Positions 9,009 through 20,037 of a stretch of 64,000 nt of DNA are shown in pieces (positions within the stretch are counted from its first letter, which is position 1; the number at the start of each line of letters is the position of its first letter). Under the pieces are notes generated by a model that was given only the letters and a program-made list of their open reading frames with translations, did no database searches and was not told the DNA's origin. The stretch is from Hyaloraphidium curvatum SAG 235-1 (Eukaryota; Fungi; Monoblepharomycota), in the NCBI GenBank assembly GCA_025558095.1, contig JAIVFI010000029.1:62001-126000 (forward strand), read 5' to 3'. Both the position numbers and the translations under genes were made by a program.

Positions 9009-10451
9009 CTGTGGGACAACCGGCATCGGGAGATCCGAGTGAGATCAGCGATCCGCTCGGTCCGGACGTCGTCCCACCTTTGCCCGTCCTGCAGCGCCGG
9101 CGCCATGTTCGTGAATTGAAAAAGGCCGGAGAGGTCGGATCTGTGAGGATACAACGGATTTACGCGGGGTTGCCATTTGTAACCCCATAGCGTCCAGCAT
9201 CCCCACCTTTCGATCACCGACCTGGGTCCGTCCGAAATCAATCCCACTGCATCTGTGAGCCAACCAAGGCGACGATATGACGCTCTTCCGGCGCATCTCG
9301 ACGTCCGCTGCCCCACCTGCAAGAAGATGTCCACGCTCAAGGGGGGAATCCGGCGCCGTCCGAGGGTCCGTGCATGCGGCCGTCCGTCGGAAAGGAATCT
9401 GTGGGAACAGTGGATAGATCGATGCTTGGATTTCTCCCCGCGTCGATCACAGCCGCGATCCCACCTGCACGGGAATGCGCGACGAAAGCGAGGCGTCGAT
9501 GTCCCCAACGTCCAGCCAGAGCCGGCCGGTCCGGATCGTCCGAAGCAATCCTGCAGGCTGTAGGGTTCGACGAGGCAGCCAGGTGAGCGTCTGTCCCGCT
9601 CCTCGCACCTGCCGTCGCCCCCACCTTATGGCGCGCTCGCGGCGACGCCGCCACCTCGTGGGCGTCCGAAGTGGTCGATCGACTCTTCGTGCTGGCGTGC
9701 ATCTGTGAGGATCGAAGAGCGCACTCGGGCCGGATGCCAAGAGATTGGCTCCAACTGTCCGCGATCCCCACCTTCCGAACAAGCCGGGGAAACCGTCCAA
9801 TGACGGATCGGCACCTGTGGGACGACCGACCGAGCTCATGGACGCTTTCCAAACGCATCCTTGCGGTCGGCTGCCCCACCTGCAGGCTCCATCCGCCGTA
9901 CGAGCGCAGCAGCTCCATCCGCCGCACGAGCACAATCAAACGCGCCGCCGAAGTATTCTCGGGGCCGACGATGCGGAGGGGAGTCTGTGGCAGCCCACGG
10001 TCCGAGGAATGGTTGGCTCTCTTGCGGGACCAATCCCCGTCCGGGGCGGTCCACCTGGCTCTGTGCACGAACGAGCCGACGTCGAAACCAATGAAAGACG
10101 CGAGAACATATTTGGAAAGCCTGTAGGGCACAACAAGCATGGAGGATGATTCTCGGATTCATCTCCTGACAGGTCGCTCTCCCACCGTGCCGCGAAGTAT
10201 CGGTTCGTCCAAAAAGCGCAGCTGGTACGCTCGTCTAGTCTTGTAGTAACGAGAACGGAATACGCGGTGAGACGAATGCGCGGCTGCCGCAGATCCGGTC
10301 GTTCCCACCGCTCGAGGACAAGCCACCCTCGGAAGCCCGATCTTCACGAGTCCCCGCGCAGGTAGTCCCTCTTGGACGCAGCCTGTGGAGATTCCCATGC
10401 AGACGTCGAAGTGAGCACCTGTGTGCGCCCTTCGATGGTCCGTCTCCCCAC
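9009..10451 (-). ncRNA. Array A: 11 hairpin-forming short GT-AG units (mirtron-like candidate)
   Basis: Minus-strand units at 10383-10451, 10240-10308, 10121-10185, 9985-10054, 9815-9879, 9703-9771, 9558-9624, 9399-9464, 9253-9316, 9141-9206 and 9009-9077. All are 64-70 nt, begin GTGG and end ACAG (one ACAAG), with complementary termini and inner stems. Confidence 0.6.
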
Positions 10452-13663: not shown

Positions 13664-14256
13664 TGCGTTCGACTGGAGGATGCGTTTTATCTTTCGGCGG
13701 TTGATTCGAGACGCGATGGCGCGGCTGTCTCCCGCTGGGTTGTTGGGGGGGCGGAATGCATTCCGCCAGTCCGCCCGATTCCGCCCGCCCCAGCGGTATC
13801 GATCCTGCCAAGACGCTCTCGAGGCGCGCACCGCGCCTGCTGCAAACATGATTCTTTGCTCTTAGTGTTGGATCGGGCAGCTATTGAGATGAAGACAGCG
13901 TTGAAGACCCCATGGAAATCCGCAGTCCTTACCGGATCCGATCTGGATGGGTTCGGGCAAGCCCAGCCCCCCCGGCAGTCCAAAGCGGCAAAACGGATCA
14001 TCTACTGTCTAGATGAATCGACTTCCATGGAATTCAAGCTTCTCAGACTTGCTGAGGAGTTCGGAGGCTGGAGGCGGGGAAACTTCGAGTGCGGCGGAGC
14101 GGACAGCCTAAACGAGTGCACTGTACTCCCCCTCCCGTGCCCGGCCAACGGGTGCCGCGGCTGCCTCGGCCGCACTTGCCGCACTTTTGCCCTCCCCCGC
14201 GCCGTCGGCGGGTGCCCACACTAGCGCCCCCCACGCCCGCCGGAACACCTCCCGCA

Positions 14257-15888
14257 ATGGCATTCTCGGTGTCGGCCACCGAGCTCCTCCTGCTCGTGAT
14301 TGCCATCGTGGTCACCCGGCGCTTCGTCGACCACGCCTACAAGGTGCTCTACTCGCCCGTCGCCAAGATCCCCGGCCCGCAGCTCCCGCGCTGGGCGCCC
14401 TTCCTGTTCTTCCTGCCCAACGCGCTGCGCGGCAAGGCCTTCGACGCCTCGTACCGCCTGCACGAGAAATACGGGCCCGTGGTCGCCGCCGCGATAGACC
14501 GCGTCTCGGTGGCCGACCCGGCGCTGGCCCACATGGTGCTCAAGACGCTGGACCTGCCCAAGTCCAAGGTGTACAACCTGCTCCGGCGGCGGGACCAGCC
14601 CGACAACATCTTTTCGACGCTCGACAAAGCTTTCCACAAGCGCGAGCGGCGGCTCATCGGGCCGGCCTTCGCCAACCAGATCGTCAACTCCCTGGAGCCG
14701 CTCATGCTCGAGGTTGTCTCGCACCTCTTTTCCAAGATCGACCAGACCATGGCCGCCGAGGGCCGCTTCGACTTTGGCCGCGGGATCCAGAACCTCGCGC
14801 AGGACGTGATCGGCGAGACCGCCTTCGGGCAGTCCTTCAACATGGTCGAGCGCGGCACGCACCCGCTCCACGAGAGCCGCCGCGTGCTGTTCCTCTTCAC
14901 CGCCGTCCGCCGGATCCTCTACATCCTCGTGGGCTGGATCCCCTACCTCCACCTGGACGAGCGGATCATGGACATGTTCCCGCAGCTGCGGCGCGCGGCC
15001 AAGGTCAACGAGGACTTTGTCTCGGGCGTGATCCGCGACCGCAAGGCCCTCCTGGAGGAGCACGCCCGCGGCGGCTCGAAGGCCGAGTTCGGCAGGCACG
15101 ACATCCTCAACGTCCTCCTGACCCACTCGGACCCCGACACGGGGGAACGGCTCACGGACGCGCAGGTGGCCACCAACGTCGGCATCATCCTCATCGCCGG
15201 GGCCGAGACCACCGCCAACAGCCTGACCTGGGCGGTCTACTTCCTCCTGAAGAACCCGCGCGCCCTCGGCGCGCTCCGCGCCGAGCTGGACGCCGCCTTC
15301 CCCGACGCCTCCACCCGCGGCCCGCTGGGGTTCGACCCCCTCCCGCACGAGACGCTGAGGAAGCTGCCCTACCTCGACGCCAGCATCAAGGAGGCCCTCC
15401 GGATCATGCCCGTAGCGGGCGTCGGCCTCCCCCGCGAGGCGGACCGCGACCTCGACCTGGGGGGGTACCTCATTCCAAAGGGGACGATGATCGGGGTGGC
15501 GGTGTTTGCGCTGCACCGCTCGCCGAAGCTGTGGCAGCGTGCGGGGGAGTTTTGGCCCGAGAGGTTCCTCGGCGAGGAGGAGGAGGAGAAGGGCGACGGG
15601 CCCAAGAGGTACAACAAGGAGGCGTTCGTGCCGTTTTCGCTGGGGACGAGGAATTGTGTGGGGATGAACTTCGCGTGGATGGAGGTGCGTCGGTCCGCCG
15701 AGGCACGGGGTGGTCAACGTTCCTTATCCCCGTCCCCGCAGATGAAGGTCGTGCTGGCGCACCTGGTGCGGTACTACGACCTCGGTTTGGTGCCGGGTCA
15801 GCAGGACAAGGAGGCGGAGGCGGTGTCGTACATCACGCTGCAGCCGCGGAGCGGGAGCCTGCTGATCACGGCCGAGCGGAGGGCTTGA
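14257..15888 (+). CDS. Cytochrome P450
   Basis: N-terminal TM anchor, IPGP, AGAETT, EALR, PERF and heme motif FSLGTRNCVG. In-frame 57-nt intron at 15685-15741. Confidence 0.95.
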   Translation: MAFSVSATELLLLVIAIVVTRRFVDHAYKVLYSPVAKIPGPQLPRWAPFLFFLPNALRGKAFDASYRLHEKYGPVVAAAIDRVSVADPALAHMVLKTLDLPKSKVYNLLRRRDQPDNIFSTLDKAFHKRERRLIGPAFANQIVNSLEPLMLEVVSHLFSKIDQTMAAEGRFDFGRGIQNLAQDVIGETAFGQSFNMVERGTHPLHESRRVLFLFTAVRRILYILVGWIPYLHLDERIMDMFPQLRRAAKVNEDFVSGVIRDRKALLEEHARGGSKAEFGRHDILNVLLTHSDPDTGERLTDAQVATNVGIILIAGAETTANSLTWAVYFLLKNPRALGALRAELDAAFPDASTRGPLGFDPLPHETLRKLPYLDASIKEALRIMPVAGVGLPREADRDLDLGGYLIPKGTMIGVAVFALHRSPKLWQRAGEFWPERFLGEEEEEKGDGPKRYNKEAFVPFSLGTRNCVGMNFAWMEVRRSAEARGGQRSLSPSPQMKVVLAHLVRYYDLGLVPGQQDKEAEAVSYITLQPRSGSLLITAERRA

Positions 15889-16027
15889 GCTTAGCGTGCG
15901 GGGCTGCAGGCCGTCGCGACGAGTTCGGCGGTGGAAGGAACGTACTTGCCGTTTGGAAGTGGATTGAGCTATTGAGGTGTTGGCCTCCGCAGGTCGGAAT
16001 TGATTCTAGTTGATGAAAGACAGAGAG

Positions 16028-16881
16028 TCACATCTTTGGCGCCTTCTCGACGAACGACACCTCCACCGCCCCCAACCTCCCCACCTCTGCCCTCGCCCCG
16101 AACCCGCCCTTTACGTCCGGCGGCGCGAACCACGGCACGATCGCCGACCCGGTCGACAGCACGTCCCCCTTCCTCAGCTCGATCCCGAACCCCGCGAGCG
16201 TCCTCGCCAGCGCGGCGACGTTGTTGAGCGGGTTCCCGGCTATGCGGGAGGAGTTGCCCTCGGCGACCGTTTTGCCGTCCACGGCTAGGGAGGCGGGGAG
16301 GTCCGCGATGTGCGGCAGGATGTCGGCGGCGGGGACCTCCGGGCCGATGACGAGCGAGTGGAACAGCACGCCGTCCGCGACCAAAAGAGGGAGGTGCAAA
16401 CGGGTGTAGCGGTTGTCGATGACCTCGAAGGCGGCGGCGACGGTGCCGATGTATTTGGCCGAGTCGGCGGCGGTGAGCGTCCGGGCAGCGGAGAGGGGGA
16501 TGGTCTCGCCCAGGCGGACGAGCACTTCGACCTGCACGTGCCCAGAGGACGGGAAATCAGCAGAAGCGGATGTGATTCGGGGAAACGCACCTCCAGGCCC
16601 AGCTTGTTGAACGAGCCCCTGTCTAGCTGGCCGCCGCTCCCGTGGACCTGCTTCGTGTGAACCGCGCCCCCGTGCGCGCTGCCATCTCCCACGGGCGGCG
16701 GCAAGACCGCGATTTTCCAGCCCACGCGGGGGCCCAGTTGCGGTTCGCGCGCCTTTGAGACCTCGAGCGCCGCGGGGTACGCGTCGGCCGCGTTCGTCGG
16801 GACGAGCTCGGCGGGCGGGGCGACGAGCACCGGCAGGCCGGCGGCGTGCGCCGAGAGGATGTACTCCGCGAGAGGGAGCAT
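16028..16881 (-). CDS. FAH-superfamily hydratase/decarboxylase, 2-keto-4-pentenoate hydratase (MhpD)-like
   Basis: GWKIA, LE|VEVLVRLG, AFEVIDNRY, LVADG, GNP, GDVLSTGS. Intron at 16532-16590 keeps the frame. Confidence 0.85.
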
Positions 16882-16973
16882 CGTTGGAATCCGGGTTGTC
16901 GGGGCCGAGGGGAGGCAGACGCGGGAGGCAATAAGGGACTCGGCCTTCCGCGCCACGTCATTCGTTGCCTTCG

Positions 16974-17389
16974 ATGTCGCGCCTCCTTGCCCGCTCCCTC
17001 CCCGCCATCAAGCTCCCTCGCCTCTCCCTTGCCTCCTCTTTCTCCTCCCGCCCTCCTGCCGCGGACGCTGAGGCCCCGCCCGCCGACGACACCGTCCCGA
17101 AGCACCCCCTCGGCTTTTCGCACTTCCCCGCCTCGGCGCGGTGCTGCCCGCCCAAATCCCCTTCGTCGGACCCCGGCACCGCGGCATTTCCGTCGAGCCC
17201 GTCGTGGACTGCGCCCAAGGGAGGAGAACGGGTGGAGGGGAAGGAGGAGGCGTGGTAGAGGGCGGAGGAGGGCAAGGAGAAGGTGGGACGCGGAGCGGAG
17301 CGATGGACGGAGCGGAAAGATGTTCATTGCCTTGCCACTGGGTCGCACAGGCTGCGGGGAGGAGGGACTACCTGCGCGGGGACTCGTGA
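16974..17389 (+). CDS. Leader small-protein gene of array B (about 115 aa, one in-frame TAG)
   Basis: MSRLLARSLPAIKLPR...HPLGFSHFPASARCCPPKSPSSDPG...EGKEEAW*RAEEGKEK|AAGRRDYLRGDS* if 17283-17350 is spliced. Many synonymous third-position differences versus copy A. Confidence 0.55.
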
Positions 17390-18600
17390 AGATCGGTCGT
17401 CGGGGTCCGCGCAAAACTTGCGCTTCGCAGGTGGGAATTCAGATCCGCGGCAGCTGCTCCGGGTTGGACTGCCCCTGATGTGCCTCCTCACAGGTTGTCC
17501 GGGCCGGACCAGCTCTGCGGCGGCCGTGGGGACGGATACCTTGATCGGATCTTCGAGGTGGGTGAGCGACGCGTTGGAGGATGGCTTACTGAGCTGTTCC
17601 TGATGTTTGCTGCGTCCTACAGTCTTTTTGATTAGCGCCCTGCTGGCGGCCGGCTTTCCCGCCGACGAGTCTGGGCGCAGAGCCAGGTGACTGGGATCCC
17701 GGCCGGCGGCGAGAGTGGTCAAAGCGCGAGAGCCAACAACAACGCACTTCCGTCGTCCCACAGCTTCCCTCCGCAACTCTCTCCCGAAGGAACCTTCAGC
17801 AGGGCGCGTCATATTCCACGCACGTTGAAACCGAACTTGCAGGTGGGGCAACGGACGGCAAGGACGAGCTTATTTGGAAACGTCGATTGGCCAATGCCCG
17901 CTTCCCCACAGGTGCCGATCCGCAAGCCGGATCGAGATCGGACGGATTCCTGCTAGCGGATGCTTCGTGCCGTTCGGACCGTGGGGATTGCAGGGTGCCG
18001 CGATGTGATCTTCTTCACATCAACGTGCGATCATGCGGTCCCCACAGATTCGCTCCAGCCCCAGCGAGTCCTCGGGCGTATCCATCGGCCGTGCGGCACC
18101 GGCAGCGATGCATCGTTCTTGTTCAGGTGGAACCGCGGCGCCAAGCGATGCGGCTGCAAAGCTGATCATTGCTTCGTCGTGAGCTCCACAGATGCCTCTC
18201 GGGAGGGACGAGCCGCGCCTTGTGGACAGCGGCGCGTTCGAATCACGCACGGACGTCCTGAAGGTGAGGAAGCGGACGTCGAGATGCGCTCCTACATTTC
18301 ATTGCGCCCACGGTCTCACAGGTGTCGCGCGCGAAGGTCATCGCGGGATGGGCTTTCTTCGCCGGTGCTCGAGTACTTTGGAAGGTGGGGATCACGAGTG
18401 CTGCGGGGTTGCTTTCGAGCATCTCCAGAACGAATGCGAGGTAGACTGGTTTTCCCCACAGATCCCAGCTTTCTCGAACCTATGGACACGGGCGTTCGCG
18501 GCTTCATGTAGACGGGCGGAGCGTACGCACGAAGGTGGGACGGCGACCGGCCCCGAGCGGATCCCGGATCTCACTCGTTGTGTATTCGCGTCTCCCACAG
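17283..18600 (+). ncRNA. Array B: 10 hairpin-forming short GT-AG units (mirtron-like candidate)
   Basis: Units at 17283-17350, 17431-17493, 17558-17622, 17687-17763, 17843-17911, 17981-18047, 18127-18191, 18264-18321, 18385-18461 and 18535-18600. Nine of ten are preceded by AG, all end ACAG, termini are complementary, and spacers are 63-80 nt. Confidence 0.6.
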
Positions 18601-18885
18601 CTTGCGCGAGCTTCTGGCGGCAGACGCGGACGCGGGACCGAAGATGGCTGGGCGGGGACGGGATTGGGACGTGTGATGCCTCCGAAGCATAGACGATCCT
18701 CAGTCGGGCCCGCACATGAGCAACTGCCATTTCCAAATCAATTCTAGCATATCTCCATCCGACTCTGACATGCTTTTCACTGTCTTCCAATCCAACTCGA
18801 AGTCGGACGGGAGGCTGTACATGAGACCGCAGTAGTTCACAACACTATAATGCTGATCCAACCCTGGCCCTCCTCCTGCGGCCCT

Positions 18886-19737
18886 TCACAGCCTCCCGCG
18901 AAGCCGTCCCCCGACGATCGAGTCCCTGAACGCCGCCAAGGCGTCGGCCAGGTCCCCGGGATCCCCATCCGTCTGCACCATGTGCCCCTTGCCCTTCAGC
19001 CACACCGTCTCCACCCCGTACGCCGCCGCGGTGCGCTCGACGGCAGGGGCCGACACCATGTTGTCGCAATCACCGCCGACCACGAGCACGGGGCAGGGCA
19101 CCTTGGAGGGTTCTGGCATCACCGTGTTCATCTGCTTGGCGGCGAACGAAGATTCCTCCCCCACGGCGGCCTGATGCTCCCTGATGGTCTCCTCTGGCGT
19201 GTCGGGGCTGAAGAGCAGCCAGCGGCACGCCCTGGGGTCCTCGTACAGCACGCTGAAGCGGTTGTACCACATGGCCTTGAGGAATGCCCAGGGCTGGTTC
19301 CAGATCATCCGCGGGCCCTCGGAGCGCATGCCGCCGACCGGGGACGACGCCAGGAGGACGATTCCGGGGAGGGCGAATCGGCCCGAGGCCGCGAGGAGCT
19401 GGGTGATGAGGCCGCCCATGCTGTGGCCCACGAGGATCGGCAGCGGGCCGGCTGCAGCGATCGCATCGAGGGCGCGTCCGACGTCGTCGCAGAAGTCGAA
19501 TATGGAGGCCTCCTGCAGCTCCGCGTGGCCTCCGCTCCCGCCGTGGCCGCGCAAAGAGACCGCTGCGGTGCCGATGCCCCTTTCGGCGAGCGCGCGCATC
19601 AGTTGGAGGTACGTGGCCGCGCGGCAGGAAGAGCCGTGGACGAGCAGGAACGCGGGCGGCGCGGGGCCCATCGAGAGCAGCTCTAGGGGAGGCGCGCCGC
19701 CGGACGCGTGGAGCATCGCCGTGCGGGCGTCGCTCAT
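18886..19737 (-). CDS. Alpha/beta hydrolase
   Basis: LLVHG, SLRGHG, nucleophile elbow GHSMGG, GGDCDNMV, GHM; intronless. Confidence 0.88.
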   Translation of the reverse strand: MSDARTAMLHASGGAPPLELLSMGPAPPAFLLVHGSSCRAATYLQLMRALAERGIGTAAVSLRGHGGSGGHAELQEASIFDFCDDVGRALDAIAAAGPLPILVGHSMGGLITQLLAASGRFALPGIVLLASSPVGGMRSEGPRMIWNQPWAFLKAMWYNRFSVLYEDPRACRWLLFSPDTPEETIREHQAAVGEESSFAAKQMNTVMPEPSKVPCPVLVVGGDCDNMVSAPAVERTAAAYGVETVWLKGKGHMVQTDGDPGDLADALAAFRDSIVGGRLRGRL

Positions 19738-20037
19738 CGGAGGCAGCTCGGTGGGACCGTTTGGGGAACAGCGCCTAAACGACGCACACGGCGAGGGTGG
19801 TGGCCTGCCCGCCGGCGCTAGCGCATTGAAATAACAAGACCGCGTGTGACGCCTCCGGCGGCATAGAGATCCGTTAACTGGGCCGGTGCACGAGTCCATT
19901 GCGAACTGCAACCCGGAGTCGTTCTATCCAACTCTCCATCCTTTCCTCCTTCTAATCCAACCGAAGAAGTGCAGCAGGGAAAGGCTGTGCTCGCGAAAAC
20001 CCCGCAACAACTCGCCGTCTCCCACTTGGTTCAAGCG

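Follow-up and report, generated by a model that had tools for sequence, protein, structure and literature searches.

Behind a short, broken reading frame in the fungus Hyaloraphidium curvatum lies an array of ten introns (array A) that is real, spliced and structurally selected and whose function is putative; with it, the genome contains at least six arrays of this kind. The introns, and not the exons, look like the product of the host gene. On balance, and with a probability of roughly 55%, we favor a model in which the host transcript releases its hairpin introns into the Argonaute pathway in a mirtron- or agotron-like manner. The stretch of DNA that we analyzed, here called the window, is 64,000 nucleotides long (C29:62001-126000) and belongs to a GC-rich eukaryotic assembly of 31.9 Mb in 55 contigs.

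Array A consists of spliced introns in a non-coding host

All ten units named in a preliminary description of the window were found where it had placed them (Table 1). They measure 58-77 nt, and their starts are on average 139 nt apart, which agrees with the periodicity of about 140 nt given there. The donor context that it assigned to almost all units, AG/GTG(G/A)G (the slash marks the splice site), holds in general but not at unit 17981, which has no AG upstream. Its view that the array is not a tandem repeat is borne out, as only short boundary motifs recur, and we therefore rejected the tandem repeat reading. A search for a tRNA or Rfam family identity of array A likewise gave no tRNA and no significant Rfam match.

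Evidence for splicing comes from Logan contigs of X1, the sole public run covering the region, aligned to positions 14200-19900 (5701 letters). These contigs skip each of the ten units at its exact GT..AG ends and at the predicted length, with junctions 2-10 in a single 704-nt contig and junction 1 in a second, and no retained form of an array A intron is listed among them. The introns of two coding genes that flank the array are also skipped in these contigs, so that the run, whose RNA nature is otherwise guessed, behaves as RNA. Thus, the units are genuine spliceosomal introns, and every junction predicted beforehand is used. X1 also contains a contig of the paralogous array B in which the first intron end is unspliced, matched at window positions 17362-17396; it may represent intron retention, pre-mRNA or DNA carry-over.

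The exons of the host appear to have lost any coding role. All ten introns sit 3' of the stop codon of the leader reading frame, which ends at an early stop in array A and is frameshifted in array B, and a third-position mismatch bias survives between the two leaders (32/98 vs 36/197, p=0.008). The leader peptide found no homologue among proteins of similar length and no match in Pfam, and a long hairpin in the leader (z -2.6 in A, -0.1 in B) is not common to both. In the spliced body of array A, all frames contain two to three stops each, and GC3 is 0.61-0.66, compared with about 0.9 in neighboring real genes. The long conserved reading frame that would have marked the locus as an ordinary intron-rich protein-coding gene was looked for in the spliced spacers and is absent, and that interpretation was rejected because the joined exons have neither a reading frame nor codon bias. 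The 34-nt block that stands out as identical amid these decayed exons is either an RNA element or a trace of gene conversion. Spliced gene models were searched exon by exon. For the convergent alpha/beta hydrolase gene, the best matches are about 50% identical and bacterial where named, so that, judged from sequence, acquisition by horizontal transfer is possible.

Table 1. Array A, its paralogues and neighboring genes. Positions are those of the window unless a contig (C29, C7) is named; z, folding z-score.
Feature	Position	Strand	Remarks
Cytochrome P450 gene	14257..15888	+	flanks array A; its ordinary intron is a splicing control
FAA-hydrolase-family gene	16028..16880	-	divergent from array A; its intron is a splicing control
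Leader, 94-aa ORF ending at early TAG	16974..17258	+	covered by RNA contig; decayed coding remnant common to array B
Hairpin intron A1	17283..17350	+	68 nt; spliced (RNA contigs); z -3.5
Hairpin intron A2, weak fold	17431..17493	+	63 nt; spliced (RNA contigs); z -0.6
Hairpin intron A3	17558..17622	+	65 nt; spliced (RNA contigs); z -3.9
Intron A4, weakest fold, terminal stem 3 bp	17687..17763	+	77 nt; spliced (RNA contigs); z +0.7
Hairpin intron A5	17843..17911	+	69 nt; spliced (RNA contigs); z -1.1; 5' arm 76% identical to B5
Hairpin intron A6, terminal stem 10 bp	17981..18047	+	67 nt; spliced (RNA contigs); z -5.2
Hairpin intron A7	18127..18191	+	65 nt; spliced (RNA contigs); z -4.6
Hairpin intron A8	18264..18321	+	58 nt; spliced (RNA contigs); 19 nt of 5' arm identical in paralogue B9
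Hairpin intron A9	18385..18461	+	77 nt; spliced (RNA contigs); z -2.7
Hairpin intron A10	18535..18600	+	66 nt; spliced (RNA contigs); upper stem common to B11
Spliced host exons, 63-80 nt each, non-coding	17351..18650	+	704-nt contig; limits are not mapped transcript ends
Exonic block of 34 nt across old stop codon, same sequence in arrays A and B	17362..17395 and 10373-10340	A + / B -	array A/B alignment
Alpha/beta hydrolase gene, intronless	18886..19737	-	convergent with array A
Paralogous array B, 11 GT-AG hairpin units (10451-10383 ... 9077-9009)	9009..10451	-	same leader at ~10790-10452; splicing predicted
Four further arrays (C-F)	C29:468-470k, C29:489-490k, C7:134.7-135.2k, C7:138.9-139.5k		genome motif scan

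At least six arrays share the same design

A genome scan for similar clusters, proposed in the preliminary description, found at least six arrays with 47 units in total and 3-11 units per array. The arrays form at least three separate groups (A/B, C/D and E/F), and a DNA search with array A returns array B alone. Paralogous units occur within and between arrays (C6-C8, D7-D8, A1-A7), which points to growth by duplication, and the highest inner identity between units is 68%, with no families of near-identical copies. Array units are longer and more uniform than ordinary introns (67.9±3.9 vs 60.5±8.4 nt, with p=0.001 for the difference in variance). They also seldom carry T at position +6 (7/47 vs 46/68 comparison introns) or a strong branch motif (9/47 vs 78/124, in a comparison set partly chosen by branch motif).

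Arrays C and D further contain hairpins that end in CCACAG and have no GT donor or a GC donor (L004:5235-5169, L004:4126-4056 and L005:~5976-5907, minus strand). A seventh apparent array (L007) was discarded as the coding gene of a Zn-dehydrogenase. The metagenome contigs searched for arrays in other species do not contain the exact leader motif, and a script-based screen of 80 out of the more than 119 loci of a tandem-unit scan gave no convincing array; the two scan loci that we examined closely are tandem repeats.

Array units are predicted to pair end to end

As a folding control we used 75 predicted ordinary introns drawn from about 0.3 Mb, partly chosen around motif matches and not RNA-verified. 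Their mean z is +0.14, compared with -2.43 for array A (p=1e-4) and -2.7 for all 47 array units. The predicted probability that G1 pairs with nucleotide -3 is 0.95 in array A and 0.10 in ordinary introns, and when the ends are held fixed the inner fold of array A is still better (-1.11 vs +0.27, p=0.004). The earlier expectation that these introns fold more strongly than shuffled sequence and ordinary introns is therefore confirmed for the array as a whole. Strength is uneven within it, and three units are weak (17431, 17687 and 17843, at z -0.6, +0.7 and -1.1).

With 60/125 predicted coding introns starting with GTGGG, more than with any other donor in this genome, some of the terminal pairing is expected from the consensus. 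Covariation beyond that consensus is nevertheless significant across the 47 units, with pair +6:-8 formed in 28 units against 13.4 expected and pair +7:-9 in 27 against 14.3. The claim that the unit ends co-vary thus stands for the arrays taken together, and it is not significant in array A alone. The proposed geometry, an end-to-end hairpin with a 2-nt 3' overhang, is also what the predicted folds favor, as the register with that overhang gives 6.6 of 8 pairs, compared with 2.8-4.5 at other offsets. End pairing is predicted in 44 of the 47 array units and 7 of the 75 ordinary introns, a count that is inflated for arrays B-F, where an end-paired look was part of the selection of units; array A is the RNA-verified one. 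At least 16 of the first 22 nucleotides are paired in 36/47 predicted folds and at least 14 in 44/47; the stems are bulged, and the folds are branched in 9/47 units. In all ten introns of array A the hairpin ends are the splice sites in use, as in mirtrons, and the predicted folds combine the pre-miRNA-like features of a 2-nt 3' overhang, at least 13 paired bases and a length of about 60-75 nt, again with three weak units in A.

The 5' arm is conserved and the 3' arm is not

Among 18 pairs of paralogous units, five of which (from C/D) were chosen by similarity, the 5' arm (nt 6-26) is 69% identical and the 3' arm 50% (p=0.005); the corresponding values for unrelated pairs are 51% and 48%. Between arrays A and B, whose overall identity is low, the 5' arm reaches 68%, compared with 51% in the exons (p=6.5e-5) and 47% in the 3' arm, and the exons themselves are near random (47% in the control). 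For E/F, the younger pair, identity is 75% in both the 5' arm and the exons, and the 3' arm diverges fastest, at 51% (p=1.7e-6). This retention of the 5' arm, with the 3' arm at background, is the main argument from sequence that the 5' end is read as sequence, and comparison of the paralogues supports selective conservation of the 5' arms. Alternatively, the same asymmetry can be described as rapid change of the 3' arm. Nearly all 5' arms begin with GUGGG, so their 5' seeds are alike (29 distinct among 47). Fungal Argonaute guides usually begin with a 5' U, whereas the array units begin with G.

The same intron class occurs in coding genes and in relatives

The preliminary description had contrasted the array units with the introns of coding genes. 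This contrast holds on average; some coding introns, however, fold in the same way. The motif AG/GTGGG..CCCACAG has 135 matches in the genome and 3 for the control, and in 81 dispersed matches the next pair inward, +6:-8, is Watson-Crick in 40 cases, compared with 19.6 expected (hand tally). Hairpin introns cluster in certain coding genes. A Zn-dependent dehydrogenase gene (L007:4590-2760, minus strand), about 4 kb from array F, has five end-paired hairpin introns beside ordinary ones; the UFD2 gene (L012:4889-3008, minus strand) has four; and the gene of a NatA auxiliary subunit (L011:4659-5653), with 2-3, is counted here with 3. Three more lie in a gene that we take from its sequence to be HMG-CoA-reductase-like (L010:5008-4225, minus strand), of which the tested exon has no Pfam match, and one further hairpin intron lies in a coding gene of the window at 57096-57031 (minus strand).

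UFD2 was compared with its orthologues from three environmental relatives (61-65% protein identity) and one distant fungal genome. After WYTF-x-TR, the intron forms an end-paired hairpin here and in two relatives, one of which has compensatory ends (GTGAGGA/TCCTCAC), and a hairpin intron is present at FYV/D here and in one relative. Structure is kept across orthologues and sequence is not, with inner identity of only 39-48%. Both positions are also occupied in the distant fungus, where the introns are unstructured (FYV/D) or have no paired ends. Since the positions are ancestral and the fold is maintained with unrelated sequence, old introns acquired this fold and have retained it. Two introns in relatives form a hairpin from the donor followed by an unpaired 3' tail, as in 3'-tailed mirtrons (L041, after MAQ, ~1452-1537; L043, after WYTFITQ). 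Thus, there is a lineage-wide class of hairpin introns, unreported as far as the literature was searched.

Small-RNA machinery and the search for targets

Dicer, Argonaute and Dbr1, which the preliminary description had asked for, are all encoded: the genome has a Dicer with a Dicer_dimer and two RNase III domains, three Piwi-domain loci and DBR1. Three more RNase III reading frames have one domain match each (L035 and L036, contig C46, and L039, at C7:115.6k); two of the three are arranged as an inverted pair, and one is located some 19 kb away from array E. The arms showed no excess of matches to potential targets in about 0.3 Mb of sampled genome (about 1%). The 19-mer conserved between A8 and B9 has 48 matches, compared with 20 for the control, at up to 3 mismatches (raw counts). 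At C19:388768-388786 (minus strand), 18 of 19 positions match this 5'-arm sequence, which may be a chance match in coding sequence.

Discussion

In the model we favor, the host transcript would have descended from a small protein gene, now broken, with ten introns located 3' of the stop. Each lariat would be debranched by Dbr1 and would then refold into a hairpin of 58-77 nt, predicted to have its 5' end paired and to leave a 2-nt 3' overhang, AG. This hairpin would enter the Argonaute pathway either after its loop is cut by Dicer, as for mirtrons, or whole, as for agotrons. The 5' arm would be the effective strand, with its first ~22-26 nt the part read by sequence, and the spliced exons would serve as a scaffold to be discarded, as in the host genes of snoRNAs. 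The arrays probably grew by duplicating units of intron plus exon and whole loci, and they may have drawn on the older, lineage-wide class of end-paired introns that is also found in coding genes. Several observations weigh against the model: the bulged and in part branched stems with three weak folds in array A, the similar 5' seeds and their 5' G, the E/F exons that match the 5' arms in conservation, and a target search that found none in about 0.3 Mb of the genome.

More tentatively, these elements may amount to an independent small-RNA system fed by splicing, with at least 100 end-paired coding introns and dedicated polycistronic hosts that each release 3-11 distinct hairpin introns to serve as Argonaute guides. 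Such a system could be described as a Drosha-free microRNA repertoire made from whole introns, with arrays growing by duplication of units. To our knowledge, fungi lack Drosha. If the model is correct, an early-diverging fungus evolved the mirtron route on its own and expanded it into host genes, which bears on the origin of microRNA pathways. If the units are undiced, what we describe is still a lineage-wide class of introns in which the donor pairs with the 3' end of the same intron and which are spliced nonetheless.

In regard to other explanations, the hairpin may work at the level of splicing or as a whole stable intron, rather than as a guide; this is the main alternative, and we consider it fairly unlikely. 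In its splicing-level version, pairing of the donor with the 3' end and a buried branch point would define a separately regulated class, responsive to a helicase, temperature or stress; in its stable-intron version, the fold would protect from exonucleases, and arrays would mass-produce introns that titrate parts of the spliceosome, as stable introns do in yeast. The class is genome-wide, with covariation in its dispersed members and clustering in coding genes, and the array introns have lost +6 T and have weak branch motifs. There are also precedents in the stable linear introns of yeast (10.1101/426049) and the structure-dependent introns of fish (PMC4691745). Furthermore, the UFD2 orthologues keep structure and not sequence, which counts against the guide reading. 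Left unexplained, however, are conservation limited to the 5' ~26 nt and the pre-miRNA-like length, and all ten introns of array A appear removed in the contigs. It is less probable still that the fold is a passive aid to splicing and the arrays are functionless by-products of tandem unit duplication behind decaying genes. The broken coding remnant in the leader would fit this notion, as would the low overall identity of A and B and the C and D hairpins that lost their GT donor. Yet ten splice sites and most folds have survived while the exons became near random, the 5' arms exceed the exons in conservation, and the arrays belong to at least three separate groups.

Two further readings seem to us distinctly improbable. 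The geometry AG[GTGGG...CCCAC]AG would fit introner or MITE insertions, with terminal inverted repeats and an AG target-site duplication, and the structured introner-like elements of fungi (PMC3609843) and the local clustering of arrays and hairpin-rich genes on contig C7 are consistent with this idea. Against recent insertion stand the lack of near-identical copies, both in inner identity and in the DNA search that returned array B only, the position of two UFD2 hairpin introns at sites shared with a distant fungus, and the compensatory ends in relatives; signs of recent gain were sought in these two UFD2 introns and were not seen. The least probable reading is that the host resembles GAS5 and its introns encode snoRNA guides, either of the C/D or of the single-hairpin H/ACA kind. 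It is suggested by the host architecture, by unit ends of the form ACA+G and by some units with two stems around a variable internal loop. However, complementarity of the bipartite pocket, which H/ACA guides have 14-16 nt from a single-stranded ACA box, to the organism's own LSU rRNA and flanks scored 11.06 vs 11.24 in shuffled sequence, and antisense runs measured 9.1 vs 8.9 nt, where C/D guides have an element of 10-21 nt. No C box and a single D box (1/47) occur in the 47 units, the ACA is not single-stranded but part of the stem, 1 nt short of the end, and Rfam gave no significant match; with LSU rRNA and flanks as the targets covered, membership in either snoRNA class was rejected.

Among known systems, conventional mirtrons of flies, worms and mammals (PMC3431481) are close to the proposed route: they too are whole short GT-AG introns of about 60-75 nt that form an end-to-end hairpin with a 2-nt AG overhang, 3'-tailed variants occur in relatives, and Dbr1, Dicer and Argonaute are encoded. 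Mirtrons are defined by small-RNA duplex reads, and a 3'-tailed form is known (PMC3431481). Such reads are about 22 nt long, with uniform 5' ends and a 3' overhang where Dicer cuts; the units described here are candidates for this class. They differ from mirtrons in coming about ten to a dedicated non-coding host, in a fungus, and in their more bulged stems and conservation in the 5' arm. A re-analysis of fungal hairpin RNAs reported that intron-contained loci are rare and their splicing-based biogenesis unconfirmed (PMC9757828). Agotrons (PMC4869172) are likewise short, stably folded whole introns, with the 5' end read in both cases (here as a proposal), but they are mammalian, 80-100 nt long, single introns of coding genes and defined by Argonaute CLIP reads that are long, aligned at the 5' end and independent of Dicer, compared with 58-77 nt in array A. 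Agotrons are GC-rich, and the GC content of array units is not above that of ordinary introns, although a stable fold is present.

The host itself resembles the non-coding snoRNA hosts GAS5 and U22HG, which have many introns behind a short reading frame, poorly conserved exons and introns as the likely products; the difference is that the cargo here is the whole intron, without boxes or rRNA complementarity. Introner-like elements (PMC3609843) and symmetrical stwintrons (PMC8469720) are also structured spliceosomal introns with complementary ends, but in our case there are no near-identical copies, the UFD2 positions are ancestral, and structure is maintained rather than degenerating. The stable excised linear introns of yeast (10.1101/426049) share a possible function as whole excised introns, yet they are defined by a short distance from branch point to 3' splice site, not by end pairing, and are not arrayed. 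Our literature search, with most subscription journals outside its scope, found no account of such arrays.

The donor consensus may have a counterpart in the spliceosome. Two U1 snRNA candidates (C2:67851-68014 and C2:73103-73266; 63 bits, below the cut-off) are without ATACYYACCTGG, and the 5' end of U1 may have been altered to fit the dominant GTGGG donor.
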